Shown here one piece after another: positions 1-9,556 of a stretch of 64,000 nucleotides of DNA (positions are counted from its first letter, which is position 1; each line of letters starts with the position of its first letter). A program made the position numbers and the translations under genes. The notes under the pieces were generated by a model. It made no database searches and was not told where the DNA came from. It was given only the letters and a program-made list of their open reading frames with translations. Origin of the DNA: Selaginella moellendorffii (Eukaryota > Plantae > Lycopodiophyta); contig NW_003314261.1 in the NCBI RefSeq assembly GCF_000143415.4, positions 2,987,266-3,051,265 on the forward strand. The letters run 5' to 3'.

Positions 1-1087
1 CTTTCTATTGGCCGGAGATGCGATGTGATATTATCTGATATGTGCGTAGCTGCATTTGGTGCCAAGCTCGTAATACTCCCCCTTGTGCTACAAAAAAACA
101 GTTGGAGTCAATTGCAGTTTCCTGTCCGTTTGAGTTGGTGGTGTTTGATTTTATGGGACTTTTTCCACAGTCGACTGCTGGCAATGAATATGTTATTATT
201 GCTTCTGATTACTTGACTCATTGGGTGGAAGTTGGTGCTCTTGCTAGCGCCTCTACAACTGCTGTTGGATACTTCCTCCTCAATCGAGTGGTGTTCCAGC
301 ATTCTTGTCCAGAGCGGATTCTTTTGGATAATGATCCTGCATTTATGGCTGAGGCATTTCATGTTTTGAAGTCTCGGTTGGGGATATGCCACACTTTCAC
401 GAGTGCTTATCATCCACAATTAGACGGTCTAGTGGAACGGCTCGTTCGGACATTCAAAGGGATGATTGTGAAGTATATGAACTTTCAGCATTTGGATTGG
501 GATGGTTATTTGTCGTTTCTTCGGTATGCCTATATCACAGGGGTGTAGAGTTTTGTTGGTGCTTCACCGTATAAACTTCTATATGGTCATAATCTAATAT
601 TATCAATGGAGCTGAGTTTACCTTCGCAATTGCCACAAGCACCCGATGCTAAGTCATGGGATTAATATTTGATGAGCATTCTTCCACTTGTCCGAACAGA
701 GTTTGCCAAACACTTAGGCCGCGTACAAGTGGGACAACAACGGCGCTACAACTCCCATCATCATCCACTTGCAGAGTACAAAGTGGATGATTTAGTGTTT
801 ATCTAGTTTCCCTATCTTACGGTACGTGGTTTATCTAAGAGGCTCCTTGCGCAGTGGAAAGGACCGTATCGGGTGTTGTGGCAAGTTGAACCACAAGTTT
901 ATGAGGTTCGGCATGATGTCCAATAGGCCGATCCTTTGGAGATTATGCATGTGCAGCGGTTAAAACGCTTCATACAAAGGGATCAGGAGCAGTTCATACC
1001 ATCTATAGACCCGCCGATGCCTCCTCCTGACGTTCCTCCAGATCCCGGTCTGTCTACAAGAGAACCCTGATGGCCTTCCATTATTTC
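1..1087 (+). mobile_element. Degenerate Ty3/Gypsy LTR retrotransposon integrase (3' end of pol), cut by the window edge
   Basis: ORF 42-548 has the zinc-finger end CxxC, PFELVVFDFMG, the DDE core (ILLDND...AYHPQLDGLVER) and downstream WKGPYRV. Multiple in-frame stops after 546. Confidence 0.9.
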
Positions 1088-1277
1088 GAGAGGAGGGGAT
1101 GATGTGAGGGCCAAGTGTACGGCTACGATGCCGTATACTAATATTAGCGTAGTGGGATTTTAGTAGCTGTCGGATTGTTTTCAATCTGGACCACTCGCTT
1201 CTGTATATAAGCTAGGGTTTTTGGGCTAATTGATAGGCACATTTTTGTATTCCCTTTCCATATTCCATCCACTCACA
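1088..1277 (+). mobile_element. Polypurine tract plus 175-bp 3' LTR of the Gypsy element
   Basis: GAGAGGAGGGGATGA (1088-1102) directly precedes TGTGAG (1103). Inverted terminus CTCACA ends at 1277. TATATAA at about 1204. Confidence 0.75.
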
Positions 1278-1309
1278 GACTTAATTGATAGCAATATTTA
1301 TAATATATA

Positions 1310-1743
1310 TGTAAACTTTTGAATTTGGACTTTCTGAGGTTACTCAACCCAATATGTCGTAAGACCTTTAACGAAAGTTAAGAGTTTTAACTTTATTGAC
1401 ACCCTACCCCTAACTAATTGAAAATTCTTAAAAGGTCACTCAATCTAGTATATCCTAAGACCTTTAATGAAAATTAAGAGTTATAGCTCTCTTGACACCC
1501 CTCAAGTCAAGCCCAATTAGAGAAAATTAGACCATCAAATATTAATTTTAACATACAGTGTAATTCTTTTAACCAACTAACAAAATTGATTCCCTTAACC
1601 AACCAACAAAATCAAACTCAAGACCCCTCTGATACCAAATATAAACTCTTGAATTTAAACTTTTCAGAAAGTCACCCAATTTAGTATTATTTAAACCAAA
1701 GACATTTAACCCTAACTATCCCAAAACCTTTAACCAATTAAAC
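1310..1743 (-). mobile_element. TRIM-like miniature LTR element (two LTR copies, tRNA-Met PBS, PPT, about 140-bp internal region)
   Basis: Minus strand: PBS TGGTATCAGAG (1637-1627). PPT ACTTGAGGGG (1507-1498) abuts TGTCAAG...TTTACA (LTR 1497-1310). A second decayed LTR copy begins at 1640; its far end is uncertain. Confidence 0.6.
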
Positions 1744-1768
1744 AAATGGATGCACTCTTATTCATAGG

Positions 1769-2900
1769 TGTAGCACACCTGAATTTGGAGCTGAACTCCA
1801 AACCCATTGCATTGCATAATAAGGGTCTAATATAATCCTATGAGCACCGACTCCCCATATGTAGCACTTACATGCAAAATGGTATCAGATGATGTCTGGA
1901 ACAATTTTGGTATATCGGTGGCTTAACATGAGGAGAAGGGTACCCTGCATTCCAACCATTATCCCTACTATACATTTGAAACCCCCCATAATTTCTATAT
2001 TCCGTAGATATGCTAAATTAGCAAATTTAGATACTTTCCATAATTAGCTAATGAAATGAAATGAGACCAATATAAAAGGCATGATAATGAAGGTGTTTGG
2101 CAAACAAAATAAGCTATCATGTAACAATATTAATGGACTAAACTCTATTACCAATTCTTATATTTAGCTAAATTTCTTCCGTGGGAATCCTGGGGATGAC
2201 ATGTACTATTTGTTTGATCAATTCATGATAGTTGCTATATATCATTCTTAGGATGATGCTTAGTGTCTATATAAATTCCTCATATATCTCCAAGAGACAA
2301 TGTTACAATGGTATAATAGTTTAACTAAAACCTTCTCCCAAATGTCTTTAACATATTTGGACATATTAACAATTATAACAATGTTTTCTATCAATTGCAT
2401 CATTTCTAGCAAGGGCTATTTGAGTCAGTTATGCAATTTGATATTCATTTCCTAAGTCTTTTACTTAATGTGGAGTCAAATATGTTCAAATAGATCAAAT
2501 TGGGTATATTGTGGCTAATACTTCATCAAAATTTTATGAAACTTATGCATGTACTTATTCTAGCCACCTTTGATGATGCTCTTTAATTGGCACAATATTT
2601 TGAGATATTACCTCTCCCACTTGTAGTTATACATATTTTTCCTATAGGAGACAATCTTGTTTTAATAGAGGTTAATGTTGTTATTGTCTATATTCAAGGA
2701 CAAGGATATGGTCATGGCCATGATGTTCATTATTTTACCTATGATGAGGTTAGCCACATGTATTTGTGTTATTAGCATTTTCTGGTTTGACATCCTCCAT
2801 TTCTTAAGTGGAGACTTTGGCATCAACAATATATTGTTGGTGTTACTTCAGTAAAAGGTCTTAACACGAAGATTTTTTTAGTAAATAAAAAGTCATGTAA
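1769..2900 (+). mobile_element. Decayed LTR element: short 5' LTR, tRNA-Met PBS and gag remnant
   Basis: TGTAGCAC at 1769 and TGGTATCAGA at 1880-1889. Fragmentary gag-like peptides FFRGNPGDD (about 2173) and FLIYLQETMLQWYNSL (about 2275), with many stops. Confidence 0.5.
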
Positions 2901-4117
2901 GTAATAGAGAGACCTTGTGTGAATAAGTTAATAACCCCTCTATCCTTTTTTCAAGAATACCATCAAATGATTCACTTGACACAAATTCATCCAATATTTA
3001 TTTTTCAAGTTTAGTTTTATATTAAAAATTCCCTTGTTATCTTTTTTGTATTGGTTGATATAAGTTTTAGTTTATCTTCTATTGCTTAATTTGTTAAAAT
3101 ATATTGTTATTTACATTTATATCATGCAATAGAGCCAATCTTCATTCTCTATAACAATGGTTGTACACATATATATGTACAATATGAGGTAGATCTAGTT
3201 GTGTATATAGGTAATCTCAAAGTTGAGCTTTAATCATTACAAGCGGTGTCAAGTCAAGTTTTTGACTTCATACTTAATATAAATCAATTATAACACAATT
3301 ATGTCAAGTATGAATTTGAAGTTTTTCCCAATTATTTTATACTCTTTTATATCTCTTCAATTCGTCTCACTTTTGTTCTATTTCATCTTTTTACTTTTAC
3401 TTTTATCACTTTTATCTCTCTACCCTTTTATTCATCTTTTCCCTTTTAAAATCCTTTAAATAGTCTTTATACTACAATGGTGAATTGGCTCAAGTAGGAA
3501 TATATTAATCTCTTCAACTTTGACCTATTGTTTGAAACCAAAATTGCAATGTATCATCTTATTCTGCTTATTCGATCAAGGTTGTTGTTTAGTGTTGGTG
3601 AGTGAGATTTGGTGTCTCACTTTTAAAGACTTAAGTGTTTCCAAGTTGTTATTTCTAGTGCAGTACCTGAATCCTATCACTTGGTTAAGCTTATAGAGAT
3701 CCAATTTCAAGCACTGCCTTCTTTACATGTCACTCAAGCTGCCCAAGATGCTTAAGTCACCTATATATCCACTCCTTCCTCTTTACAACTGTTGACATGT
3801 TATATGCCTACTACTGCACTTCCTACCATGAGCCCTTCTAGTGACAATTAACAACCCTACTCCTCTTAGAGTGAGATAATTTAACTTTGCCCTTGCCTTT
3901 TTCAAGCATGCTTAAGGCAATTGAAATCTAGTATGTGAATCTTTTCTATTTTACCCAGTTTGCTGCTCATGAGTAAGATTTTCTTTGTGAGAGCCAACTA
4001 ATGCAAAGGCTAAGCATTCCTGCATCTCCAACTCTCACAACTTTATTCCAGCTTCTAGATTTCCAAGAGCAAGTCATTGGCTCGCTGCTTTGCAAGTACA
4101 TAAGCCCACAACCATTG

Positions 4118-4280
4118 GGAGGGTACTTGTACTCAAACCATATAAAAGACTATAGCATAGATTAACAATGGAAATAAAGAGTTCCAATGTTTTAAAGGGA
4201 ATGAGTAAGTGTTTCCCAGTTTTTATTTTCGTTGCTAATCTATGCTATAGTCTCTCATGGTTTGCATAGAAGTGCCCTCC
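4118..4280. mobile_element. MITE-like element with about 60-bp imperfect terminal inverted repeats
   Basis: Left arm GGAGGGTACTT...GACTATAGCATAGATTAACAATGGAAATAAA is the near reverse complement of right arm TTTATTTTCGTTGCTAATCTATGCTATAGTC...AAGTGCCCTCC. Confidence 0.65.
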
Positions 4281-4934
4281 TAGATTCAGAATGATCATAT
4301 ATAACCCACCCTCTGATCACCATGATTTTTCTCATAAGTCTCCCTTTAGAGGGTCCTTTTCTTAGGATTTGCCACCACATTATTCTTGCCCTACTAGAAT
4401 GGAGCTACATTTTGTTATCCTATCATCTTAACTTGGTGCCTAACACTCTAGAATGGATCACCTTTGTAGTGAAATCAAAATAGTCAAGTTTGACATGGGA
4501 AGCTAAAAGTTTCACAAAGTTTCTCATGTGCAGAGCCAGGAGCAAGATGGGAAGACTGACTTTGTGGCCAAGAATTGTTGCAGGATACCAATGCTATCTG
4601 AAAATGCGAGCAGAGATCCGAAATGGCATTGGATACATCAGCGTACTCAATGCTTTTAAAAAGCAGACTGAATGAACAGGGAAAAATGAAAATCGAAGAA
4701 GGTCCATATTCCTCACACGCAAAGACTTGGCGACCCTGGCTGCTCGTGGCGCTTAGCTTCTTCGTTGCATCGCAAAAGAACAGAGGGCAAGAAAATAATA
4801 TTCCCGTTGCGAAGGTAGAATATTCTATCTTGACCTAAAGCTCACGGGCGAGCTAATCTTGGTGGGCGCGAGCTAGGCGGCAGCGCCTGCGCGCGAAGAA
4901 TGTGACTGAATTTCGCGAGGGAGGGGGAGAAACC

Positions 4935-7518
4935 ATGGCACAGGTGAGGCGCTCCAAGCGGCAGAGAGTGGCGGTGGATTACGCGCGCCTGGACGAGACG
5001 GGCTTCGACGATTGCACCAGGGTTCAGTACAGGAAGCTGTCGCGGGCGGTGGCCAAGTGGGACGATGCTTCTCAAGGCGAGGCCGAGATCGGCAGCCAGG
5101 GAGGCGGAGGAGGAGGCGGAGGCGGAGGGGGCCAGACTCTCGCAGCCGCCGCCGTGCCCGTCGTGGAGGCCAAGGATTTGTCACACTATGTGCACTCCAC
5201 GGGCTTTAAGAACCCGTGTGTCGTGAGAGCTGTGGACGACGGTGCCTCTGCTCTTGGGCTAAGGTATGGATGCTTTCTTTTTCTTTGTTCTCGCTTACGT
5301 TTGCTAAATTCTTTTATCTCTTTCGCATTCCTGGTTGTTCTAGGCTCCCGGAGACACAATTGACTGTCGAGGATTTGGCTAAGCTGGTTGGCTTCGACCG
5401 GCAGATCGAAACTATAGATGTTACCACACAGGTATTCTTTTCTGCTTATCGTTCTTCTCACTTCTTCTTTGGGAATCAGGCTGAAGGTCCCGTGTATGCT
5501 ATGGAGGATTGGGTGTCGTATTTCTCGTCGCCAAATCCAAAGAAGCCTTTACTAAACGTTGTGTCACTGGATCTGGCGAACACTCCGCTCCAGAAAATGG
5601 TGAGGCCGTAAATTCCCTCACCTTGAGCTCAAAAGTCATTATTTTTTCAGAAGGATAACACGGCATGTTCCTGTATAGGTCAGTGCGCCTTCCTTAGTGA
5701 AAGAGCTGGACCTTGTGGAGAAGGCGTGGCCTCGTAACCAGAGTACCACCATTCCAGAGGTTTGCGACTTCGTCACTGTACGCATGGCTTTACTCAAACG
5801 TAGTCTACAAATAGGTCCAGCTTTATGCGATAATGAGCGTTGAGGGTTGCTTCATGGATTTTCATCTTGATTTTGGAGGGTCCTCGGTGTGGTACCATGT
5901 TATAAGGTAGGTGCTGGTATTGTCTTCTTTTATCTGTTTGTGTAAACGCTTGTTTTACAGTGGGAAAAAGACATTTTTGATGATCCCTCCAACAAAGGGA
6001 AATCTCATGCTTTTCGAAGAATGGTCTTCATCAGATAGGCAGGCAGGTATTTAGTTTTCGATGTTAGCATTGTTTTATGAGAAAAGCGGCCTTGCAGGCT
6101 AGCGTGTTCTTTGCAGAGCGAGCTAGCGGAGGCCAGAAAGTCGAGCTCTCGACTGGAGACACTCTCCTACTGTAAGCCGTTCTTCTATTCGCTAGTTTGC
6201 ACATCCATCTAACGTTTGTTTTGCTGCAGGCCTGGGGGCTGGCCGCATTGTGTTGTAACTCACTCCGACTCGATAGTTATTGGTGGAAATTTCCTGACAG
6301 GCTACAATCTGGGGCTTCAGCTCGATATATATCCTTTATCTTGTTCTTTGGATGACAGCGACAGATTCTTTTCCTTGACCTTACAATACTTGGCTGATGG
6401 AGGAGCGGCTCAAAGTTCGCCAAAAGTTTCGGTTTCCCTTCTATAAGCAGCTAATGTGGTATGTGATACTTCCATGGCAGATTTGTGTAGCTGATGTTTG
6501 AAATTATAGGTATACTGCAACTCGCTATTTACAGCTACTAAAAGATGACTCTGGCAAAGAAGAGGTTACTAGCTGGGAAAAGGAAGGTCTTCCGAAACTT
6601 GTAAGAGGTCTCAAGTTCTGGTTGCAGGTAAGATGGGTAGTGTTCATGCTTACGTTCTTACAAGACTCGTGTTTTCTTCAGTCTAAGGATGGCGGTGAGG
6701 TGCCTCCCGACATTTCTGACCCGGTTGAACTTTTGAAAGAACTCGAGAACATCTTAAAAGTGAAGGTAACAAACAAAGCGGCATTTTTATGGTGGCTCAC
6801 ATGCGTATGTGGCAGAAAAGCAGTTCGGATGTGGGTTTGACGAGCCCGACGGAAGGCGAGACAAGCGTAAGCGAAGGGATTCGACTTAATCTACTATAAT
6901 TCTTGCATATGTTTCAGGTGAAGCCAGAAAAGGTCGAAAATGAGGAAGAAGAGGCGGAGGAAGAGCAAGAGGACGATGAAGGAGAGGTAAGCTCATACTT
7001 TCTACATGTGGTAGTCACACACCTCTCGTGCCAATGCAGGTATTGTACGATGAAAACCGGAAGGATGACGACGAGGATTTCGACGTGGAAAAGGACGGAG
7101 ATGCGACCAGCAGCGACACTGACGAAGAGTTTGACGATGAATCAGAGTACTCAGAAGACAGTGATCGACCACGTCGGAAACCAAAGCCATACTCTCGAGG
7201 AGGACGAAAGGTAAAAGTCTCGATACTCTTCCCGCGCGTGTTTAGATATCACAAGAGCTCGAATTCCAGGAAGTAAAGTCGGCCTCGGTGTCGAAGCTAA
7301 TGCACGGAACGAAGCCATCGCCGGTGAAGAAAGCCTCAAACACCAAAGCCAACACGACCGTGAGGGAGCGATTGATGAAGAAGATCGGAGTAGATCCGAG
7401 GATGCCTTTCAATCCCAGGCAGCAAAAGCCGAGGCAGCGAGAAGAAAGCCCCCCTCCAGAGGAAGAAGAAGGCGATGAAGGAGACGAATTCGATGGGGAA
7501 GAAGCCGCGAGGATTTAA
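4935..7518 (+). CDS. JmjC-domain histone demethylase of the JHDM1/KDM2-KDM7(PHF8)/Jhd1 type, multi-exon, acidic/basic C-terminal tail
   Basis: Spliced product contains [86 protein letters not shown] and [13 protein letters not shown]. The HxD...H Fe triad is present. Confidence 0.88.
6329..6389 (+). other. U12-type (minor spliceosome) AT-AC intron in the JmjC gene
   Basis: 5' site ATATCCTTT (6329-6337), branch site TTCCTTGAC (6371-6379), 3' AC (6388-6389). Removing it restores LQLDIWLMEERL in frame. Confidence 0.9.
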
Positions 7519-7658
7519 GAGAATAAGAACCAGTCATATGCTTATGCTTCATTTGGATGTATAGAATGTATTCTATCGTCTGGACAATAGCTAGCTAGCC
7601 CGGTCGCGAGGTCGAATCTAGGGAGGCCGCGAGACCAAATATTTAGCCAGGTGGAAAG

Positions 7659-9181
7659 ATGGGAGACATGGCATTGAGGGTTTCGGTCCCTTGTGTGTCG
7701 CGGATCCACAGGGCGGCGCTAGCGTCTTCGTCTAATCGCTGCTCTTCTTCTCTTCAATCCACATCGCTGCATTCCAGCTGCGCGAGGATCGTCGGGCGCT
7801 GCATTGATCGAGCTCCCGCTGCTGGTATGGATTTTCTACTCCATCGGGCTTGGATTATCGATGGCTTTGGTGTTGCAGGTGGTTTCCGGCAGAGGATCAG
7901 AGGTATGGCGTCTACCGAAGCGGCGGAATTGGACACTGGAAAGGAGAGCGTTCTGGAATGGGCACAAAAGGATAATCGCCGCATGCTACATGTCGTGTAC
8001 CGTGTTGGCGATTTGGATAAGACGATCAAGTGAGTTCTTCGGTTGCTTTTTTTTTTTTTTTCTGTGGGATCATCTTTGCTTTTTGTCCTTAGATTTTACA
8101 CCGAGTGTCTTGGAATGAAGCTCTTGCGCAAGCGTGACATTCCCGAAGAGAGGTACACGAATGCTTTCCTGGGTTATGGACCCGAGGACAGTCACTTCGT
8201 CGTAGAGCTCACATACAGTAAGTTTATCTCAGACCTTTTCTCTCAATGCGCTGTTTTGATCAATTTCTTTTTGCAAGACTATGGAGTTGATAAGTACGAT
8301 ATTGGAACTGGATTTGGACATTTCGGGATTGCTGTCGAGGACGTGAGTGAGTTTGAGATTCATAGCTGTGAGCTCATATGAAACTACAGGTGTACAAAAC
8401 CGTGGATTTGGTTAAAGCCAAAGGTGGGAAAGTCTCGAGAGAGGCGGGTCCTGTCAAAGGAGGATCCACTGTGATAGCCTTTGTGGATGATCCCGATGGA
8501 TACAAGTTCGAGCTTATTCAGAGACCAGCGACCCCGGAGCCTCTGTGTCAAGTCATGCTGCGTGTTGGTGATCTCGATCGATCCATCAGCTTCTATGAGA
8601 AGGTATATCAACATGCTTAAGCCATTCGTGCCTTTCTGCATGGTCTTTTGTTCCAGGCGCTTGGAATGAAGCTCCTCCGCAAGCGTGACAATCCCGAGTA
8701 CAAGGTAAGCTTAAAGTTTCTCGCCTCATGCTTCTATGCTTGTCTCGTGCGCGAGTGTGCAGTACACGCTTGCGATGATGGGATACGCGGAGGAAGATAA
8801 GACCACTGTGATGGAGCTGACTTACAACTATGGTGTTACCGAGTACACCAAAGGAAATGCTTATGCCCAGGTTCGTGCATCACTCCATCTTTGGCCTTTA
8901 TAGTTTCTCGCTCTCTCTCTCTAGATTGCTATTGGCACGGATGATGTCTATAAAACTGCTGAAGCAGTCAAAGTTTCTGGTGGCAAGATTACTCGCCAGC
9001 CAGGCCCTCTTCCTGGCATCAGCACGAAAATCACAGCTTGCCTCGATCCGGATGGCTGGAAGACTGTAAGCTTTTCCTGATGCATTGTTTCTCGATCCAT
9101 CTCACACGACTATTTTGTTCCCTTTCCTTTATCCTTCAGGTCTTCGTTGATAACAAGGACTTTCTCAAGGAACTCGAATGA
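7659..9181 (+). CDS. GLX1: Glyoxalase I (lactoylglutathione lyase), two-domain Ni2+-type, N-terminal transit peptide
   Basis: [73 protein letters not shown] and C-terminal [13 protein letters not shown]. Confidence 0.95.
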
Positions 9182-9556
9182 ACTAGAACTGCAATTTTCA
9201 GTGCCTAATCGCTTTTAAAAAATTAAATATGAATTCCAGCCAAACCTGGTTTGTATACATCATTGTTCCTGCTCATGGAGCAGCTGTGAGGAGGCATCCT
9301 TGGTGGTTGTTCTCACCGCTATGACCACCAGGAGATTTGAGCACATATCCAAGCTTGTGCTTGGTTCAAGGATTATACCCCAATAAGAGCTTTGGGAACG
9401 AACCACACCTCACCTCCACAGTCCTCTTGACGATCTCATAAGCACCTCTTGGCGGTTGGCGCTGAGCAATATTGCGGATGAGGAGAAAAGTGGGTGAAAA
9501 AATTCTGATGCTGGATTGCCAGGCTGGGCTATGAGAAGAGTCATCCAGTGGCTCGC

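Follow-up and report, generated by a model that had tools for sequence, protein, structure and literature searches.

Does Selaginella moellendorffii, a lycophyte, carry an intact histone demethylase of the JHDM1 (KDM2/KDM7/PHF/Jhd1) family, and what has become of this family in other plants? The question is raised by a gene near the start of a 64,000-nucleotide stretch of its genome (the window), in which a first-pass annotation had claimed a demethylase of this type that is retained in seed-free plants and lost in angiosperms, possibly with altered cofactor use. The scheme in PMC6546728 is attributed here to Qian et al. 2015. The accompanying claim that surveys report the clade as absent from plants could be confirmed in the papers, as Zhou and Ma 2008, with moss in their data set, describe KDM2 as animal-specific and KDM2, KDM4 and KDM6 as having no plant member, and the KDM2 group is missing from plants according to PMC2579438 and PMC6546728. 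It does not hold for all of the literature, however, since Iyer et al. 2010 recorded JHDM1/KDM2/PHF2 as occurring in plants, and the Selaginella protein is already correctly named in RefSeq, as "jmjC domain-containing histone demethylation protein 1". The family is a known one and not a new kind of system, but its phyletic pattern is under-reported. A 2022 survey of 21 plants (PMC9029850) lists 12 Selaginella JmjC genes in five groups, with 437404 and 408434 not included; the low JmjC score of the protein in Pfam (24.5 against a cut-off of 24) may explain the omission. The "KDM7" of a 2025 Arabidopsis preprint was set aside as belonging to the unrelated plant PKDM7/JMJ14-19 group, and no literature on JHDM1 together with Marchantia was found.

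Gene model and unusual introns

Translation of candidate exons in the region 4500-8000 gave a spliced frame that is open over 591 codons and 15 exons, from an ATG at 4935 to a stop at 7516-7518 (Table 1), with introns of 48-80 nt. The protein is identical residue for residue to RefSeq XP_024528476.1 (P0158, 591 amino acids), which shares its protein cluster with the older gene model EFJ37823.1 (SELMODRAFT_437404). Its scaffold in the Selaginella assembly is 6.95 Mb long, and the downstream neighbour, at about 7659-9200 on the same strand, is a gene for a two-domain glyoxalase I (lactoylglutathione lyase). Positions 1-4000 of the window are AT-rich (GC of 0.36 vs 0.47-0.56 elsewhere), have no long open reading frames near the gene and may be intergenic or repeat DNA.

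A syntenic second copy (XP_024527750.1, P0264), followed by the same glyoxalase gene, is found on scaffold GL377573.1 and is an allelic haplotype. Gene plus flanks are 97.5% identical between the two copies, with site differences of 1.1% in exons and 1.6% in introns, and the codon differences comprise 12 synonymous and 7 non-synonymous changes, six of the latter falling outside the catalytic core.

Table 1. Features of the JHDM1-type gene and its product, in window coordinates.
Feature	Position	Strand	Basis or role
Entire coding region	4935..7518	+	spliced open frame; equals XP_024528476.1
Exons 1-5	4935-5263, 5344-5431, 5480-5599, 5679-5759, 5815-5906	+	exon model
Exons 6-10	5961-6042, 6098-6171, 6230-6328, 6390-6458, 6510-6627	+	exon model
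Exons 11-15	6682-6765, 6816-6866, 6918-6986, 7040-7210, 7270-7518	+	exon model
Catalytic core, residues 74-412 (N-terminal mixed domain, JmjC beta-helix, Jumonji helical domain)	5154..6765	+	exons 1-11; end-to-end alignment with KDM7A and KDM2A crystal chains
Met220 codon (replaces 2-oxoglutarate Thr)	5854-5856	+	aligned to KDM2A YTDFHVD, T209 equivalent
His223 codon, iron ligand	5863-5865	+	KDM2A H212 equivalent
Asp225 codon, iron ligand and pocket base	5869-5871	+	KDM2A D214 equivalent
Lys240 codon, 2-oxoglutarate-binding Lys	5968..5970	+	invariant, 56/56 aligned family members
Intron 6, GC donor (GCAGGT) and AG acceptor	6043-6097	+	GC-AG form used by RefSeq protein; signals kept in other haplotype
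His295 codon, third iron ligand, inside GWPHCVVT	6246..6248	+	KDM2A H284 equivalent
Intron 8, U12-type AT-AC, 61 nt	6329-6389	+	donor ATATCCTTT; branch-site-like TTCCTTGAC 11 nt before terminal AC
Asn309, pocket base			KDM2A N298 equivalent
Tyr210, Phe226, pocket walls			KDM2A Y199, F215 equivalents
Tyr233, low-methyl-state marker			KDM2A Y222 equivalent
Lys334-Phe335, flap over substrate			KDM2A K323-F324 equivalents
C-terminal basic motif, residues 538-556	7354..7410	+	V540, R541, R543, G549, D551, P552 invariant in land plants; predicted helix 540-547

Two of the introns carry unusual signals, GC-AG in intron 6 and AT-AC in intron 8, and these are kept in both copies and used independently by the RefSeq annotation. 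At intron 6 the donor context is CAG/GCAGGT, with a rival GT donor 4 nt downstream and a rival AG 19 nt past the normal acceptor. The GT-AG form (6047-6116, with 5961-6046 joined to 6117) is in frame and 5 residues shorter, but it was rejected because it loses the SVFFA segment, which is present in all orthologues, and because RefSeq has the GC-AG form; it could be an alternative isoform. The signals of intron 8 are identical in the other Selaginella haplotype, and the moss Ceratodon has an AT-AC intron (ATATCCTC and CCTTGAC; locus L005, about 3887-4124) that matches it in codon and phase. In a leech the nearest intron is GT-AG and lies one codon upstream of the intron 8 site, and in the alga Myrmecia the intron is at a different position.

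Family assignment, distribution and ancestry

In a search of the whole protein against the PDB the best matches were KDM7A (1e-71), KDM2A (2.5e-71), PHF8 (5e-64), PHF2 (1.5e-52) and worm KDM7 (5.5e-38), and the next JmjC family, JMJD6, followed at an E value of 0.077, some 70 orders of magnitude behind KDM2A and KDM7A. These similarities far exceed what chance would give. Single exons gave the same families: exon 5 matched KDM2A at 7e-11 and PHF8 and KDM7A at about 1e-08, exon 8 matched all three at 2e-05, and exons 3 and 9 matched them weakly and in collinear order; exon 7 by itself matched nothing in the PDB. The family signatures claimed in the first-pass annotation are all present, NVVSL in exon 3, P.LV.ELD.V...WP in exon 4, FRFPFY...MWY across exons 9-10 and two others in exons 5 and 8. 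Pfam assigned the Jumonji helical domain (PF17811) to residues 315-407 with an E value of 4.8e-10 (40.2 bits vs a cut-off of 23.4), JmjC to residues 211-310 and also Cupin_8, and PHD (PF00628), CXXC, F-box and LRR domains were all absent from the whole-protein search, as had been claimed for the first three. In the per-exon Pfam search, for which the exons are too short, only the Jumonji helical domain appeared (exon 9, E value of 0.04), and a feature search of the ESM Atlas returned mixed JmjC clusters without useful taxonomy.

An AlphaFold model built from a 56-sequence alignment has pLDDT values above 90 over about residues 70-415, with helices predicted at 316-415 in the region of the Jumonji helical domain, and a tail that is disordered except for a short helix at 540-547. 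When the model was compared with the PDB by Foldseek, the top 30 matches were all PHF8, KDM7A, KDM2A, PHF2 or worm KDM7 (target TM up to 0.89, rmsd of about 2 Å). JMJD6 came after these (E value of 1e-12, TM of 0.52-0.57), and JMJD5 and TYW5 matched at the level of the fold only, with a query-normalised TM of about 0.3. Sequence, Pfam, fold and the tree described below support the assignment of the gene product as a genuine and intact member of the JHDM1 family, and the clade named at the outset is borne out by the same four lines of evidence. The outcome that would have spoken against it, a grouping with JMJD6 or the JmjC-only clades, did not occur.

Both ends of the protein carry short motifs. 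At the N-terminus a short basic motif precedes a poly-Gly run; the 11-Gly run of residues 56-66 is encoded by a GGA/GGC repeat at 5100-5132 and, among the aligned orthologues, is confined to the Selaginella protein. The acidic tail is disordered apart from the C-terminal basic motif, and a [ST]V[RK].RL.KK motif of this kind ends the family proteins of land plants, Mesostigma, other green algae, chytrids and Mucoromycota; the animal KDM2/PHF proteins that were inspected do not show it. The motif may serve nuclear import or nucleosome contact.

Relatives were collected by HMMER with exon 5 against 1.84 billion representatives. The best full-length relative, a Psilotum nudum protein (P0014), then served as query in a word-indexed search of 5.8 billion proteins. 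Full-length orthologues, with E values of 1e-220 to 1e-124, were found in Diphasiastrum, Ceratodon (two genes), Marchantia (MpCupin43), Sphagnum, Ceratopteris and Adiantum, all of them in chromosome-scale assemblies, and in Calypogeia. Ranked next were green algae (Myrmecia, Bryopsis, Coccomyxa, Mesostigma), followed by fungal Jhd1 and animal PHF8, KDM2 and PHF2. Neither search, both of which covered protein collections in which gymnosperm proteomes are sparse, turned up a named seed-plant protein; the Psilotum query belongs to the fern part of the tree, beside the expected branching point of any seed-plant orthologue. Orthologues in Arabidopsis or rice, which would have contradicted the proposed loss in angiosperms, were likewise not among the relatives in these searches. 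Physcomitrium patens is absent from the orthologue matches, though Ceratodon and Sphagnum are present, for which loss in this lineage or incomplete annotation may account; a Physcomitrium without the gene would fit the moss data set of Zhou and Ma 2008, in which the family is missing.

In a maximum-likelihood tree (IQ-TREE, 34 rows and 442 columns), Viridiplantae were recovered with support of 100/99, the land plants with 99/99 and the bryophytes (liverworts and mosses) with 93/90. The lycophytes adjoin the fern clade (100/100), in which Psilotum is outermost, and the animals (KDM2 plus KDM7/PHF, 98/93) are sister to the fungi. Two proteins known from transcripts, P0151 and P0152, branch after Psilotum and before the Polypodiales within this clade and are thus fern proteins. 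Since the tree mirrors the species tree, the gene is vertically inherited, and it is co-orthologous to both KDM2 and KDM7. These comparisons show the family to be ancestral to the green lineage and kept in algae, mosses, liverworts, lycophytes and ferns, and it was probably lost once, in the seed-plant ancestor. The proposal of retention in seed-free plants and loss in angiosperms is supported by this distribution.

Active site and the methionine at position 220

Roles and numbering of the active-site residues were taken from KDM2A (Cheng et al. 2014, PMC4197961). Alignment confirmed the intact HxD/H triad and 2-oxoglutarate-binding lysine that had been described for this protein (His223, Asp225, His295 and Lys240), as well as the methionine in place of the usual 2-oxoglutarate-binding threonine. 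Among 56 aligned family members the iron triad, Lys240, Tyr233, Asn309, the pocket walls and the flap are invariant or nearly so. The position of KDM2A Y222, kept here as Tyr233, is Asn in KDM4/5/6, which accept trimethyl-lysine (Cheng et al. 2014, PMC4197961). From these residues the enzyme is predicted to retain its chemistry and to act on mono- or di-methyl lysine. The 12-residue insertion loop of KDM2 that carries N186 is absent, as it is from the KDM7, fungal and algal proteins, and Pro294 (GWPH) is common to the entire green lineage, whereas fungi and animals have GWIH.

In the family alignment Met220 is also found in liverworts, mosses, both lycophytes, Psilotum and the fern proteins P0151 and P0152, and Thr is found at this position in the Ceratopteris/Adiantum (Polypodiales) clade, green algae, fungi and animals. 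On this distribution Met220 is no oddity of Selaginella but the ancestral residue of land plants, and the tree implies two changes, from Thr to Met on the stem of the land plants and back to Thr inside the ferns. The substitution is expected to take away one hydrogen bond to 2-oxoglutarate. Phe occupies the equivalent position in KDM4/KDM5 enzymes, which are active (PMC9029850), so a hydrophobic residue at 220 is compatible with the use of 2-oxoglutarate. A working enzyme is favoured since Met has been kept for so long while the other pocket residues are invariant. The suggestion of altered cofactor use through Met220 finds no support in the alignment, given that the residue is ancestral for land plants, that the other cofactor and pocket residues are invariant and that KDM4/KDM5 have a hydrophobic Phe.

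Probable function and comparison with known systems

Taken together, we consider it likely that the gene encodes an intact JHDM1 dioxygenase, probably a demethylase of mono- and di-methylated histone lysine, that has come down by vertical descent and was apparently lost on the seed-plant stem. The protein is made up of the catalytic core (mixed domain, JmjC and Jumonji helical domain), a disordered tail of acidic character and the C-terminal basic motif, with no reader or DNA-binding domain, and most likely carries out an Fe(II)/2-oxoglutarate-dependent hydroxylation of a methyl group on the mono- or di-methylated lysine, the methyl being released as formaldehyde. The target lysine is not readable from the sequence; the N186 loop is absent and there is no PHD finger to guide the enzyme. 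H3K36me2/1 would be the most parsimonious target, H3K36 being the target common to fungal Jhd1 and animal KDM2. The gene goes back by vertical descent to the ancestor that green plants share with opisthokonts and is older than the animal KDM2/KDM7 split; Met has stood in place of the 2-oxoglutarate-binding Thr ever since the ancestor of land plants.

Other readings of the same data were weighed against this one. The protein might be a catalytically weakened or non-catalytic chromatin factor, in which Met220 lowers 2-oxoglutarate binding and which acts as a scaffold through its N- and C-terminal motifs. The occurrence of Met across bryophytes, lycophytes and early ferns and the strong conservation of the terminal motifs would agree with this, and the title of PMC6753492 reports a demethylase-independent function of KDM2. 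Invariant iron ligands, Lys240, Tyr233, Asn309 and pocket walls across the land plants would be unexpected without catalysis, however, KDM4/KDM5 are active despite their Phe (PMC9029850), and the ferns with Thr are otherwise alike to their relatives with Met, so that we regard a weakened or non-catalytic protein as unlikely. An active dioxygenase on a substrate other than histone lysine, either a non-histone protein or another type of residue, would account for the lack of a reader domain, and the substrate determinants of KDM2A are only partly present; as the residues that form the methyl-lysine pocket of KDM2A are nevertheless conserved, and many fungal Jhd1-type proteins are likewise without a PHD finger, this too has a low probability.

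That the closest relatives outside the green lineage are fungal Jhd1 proteins might point to a contaminant or to a recent horizontal acquisition from a fungus, but the gene lies on a multi-megabase Selaginella scaffold with the same neighbours in both haplotypes, its introns are Selaginella-sized, the U12 intron is shared with a moss and the tree mirrors plant phylogeny; the intact reading frame also argues against a decaying pseudogene. Synteny, shared introns and the tree refute all three of these readings, which we hold to be exceedingly improbable.

The preferred reading, an intact demethylase lost in seed plants, would provide a datable loss of one class of histone demethylase, and MpCupin43 of Marchantia would be a tractable model for the role that the enzyme had until other JmjC groups replaced it in seed plants. 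Met, conserved at a cofactor contact, and its natural reversion in ferns form a ready pair for enzymology. It is conceivable, although we think it rather doubtful, that the change from Thr to Met, which bryophytes and lycophytes have kept for over 400 million years and which was undone in the Polypodiales, retunes how tightly the enzyme binds 2-oxoglutarate (or oxygen or succinate) and makes the protein a metabolic sensor acting on chromatin or on a non-histone target; if so, the loss in seed plants would be a real rewiring of H3K36 or H3K9/K27 demethylation.

With the surveyed plant JmjC groups (KDM3, KDM4, KDM5, JMJD6 and JmjC-only) the Selaginella protein has in common the JmjC fold and Fe/2-oxoglutarate chemistry, but its gene falls outside all of them; even JMJD6, the nearest other family, is too distant in sequence and fold for membership of the JMJD6 or plant JmjC-only groups. 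Human KDM2A/KDM2B (JHDM1A/B, FBXL11/10) score equal to KDM7A, and the equivalents of their Fe triad, Y222, N298, Y199, F215 and K323-F324 are kept. They have CXXC, PHD, F-box and LRR domains and the N186 loop that aids H3K36 reading, whereas the Selaginella protein has none of these and lies outside the animal clade, so that it is not a member of the animal KDM2 subfamily. With human KDM7A (KIAA1718/JHDM1D) and PHF8, core residues 83-412 could be aligned structurally at about 36% identity, and the JmjC plus Jumonji helical domain, with no insertion loop between WP and PxVQ, is shared. Unlike the Selaginella protein, KDM7A and PHF8 carry a specificity-directing N-terminal PHD finger, which reads H3K4me3 and in the absence of which the protein does not belong to the KDM7/PHF subfamily, and they have Thr where it has Met220; its tail is acidic, with a different end motif. 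The Jhd1-type proteins of Mucoromycota and chytrids are similar in size and build, with a core, a low-complexity linker and a C-terminal [ST]V[KR].RL, and many of them lack a PHD finger; they differ in having Thr and GWIH, and form a separate clade that is joined with the animals.
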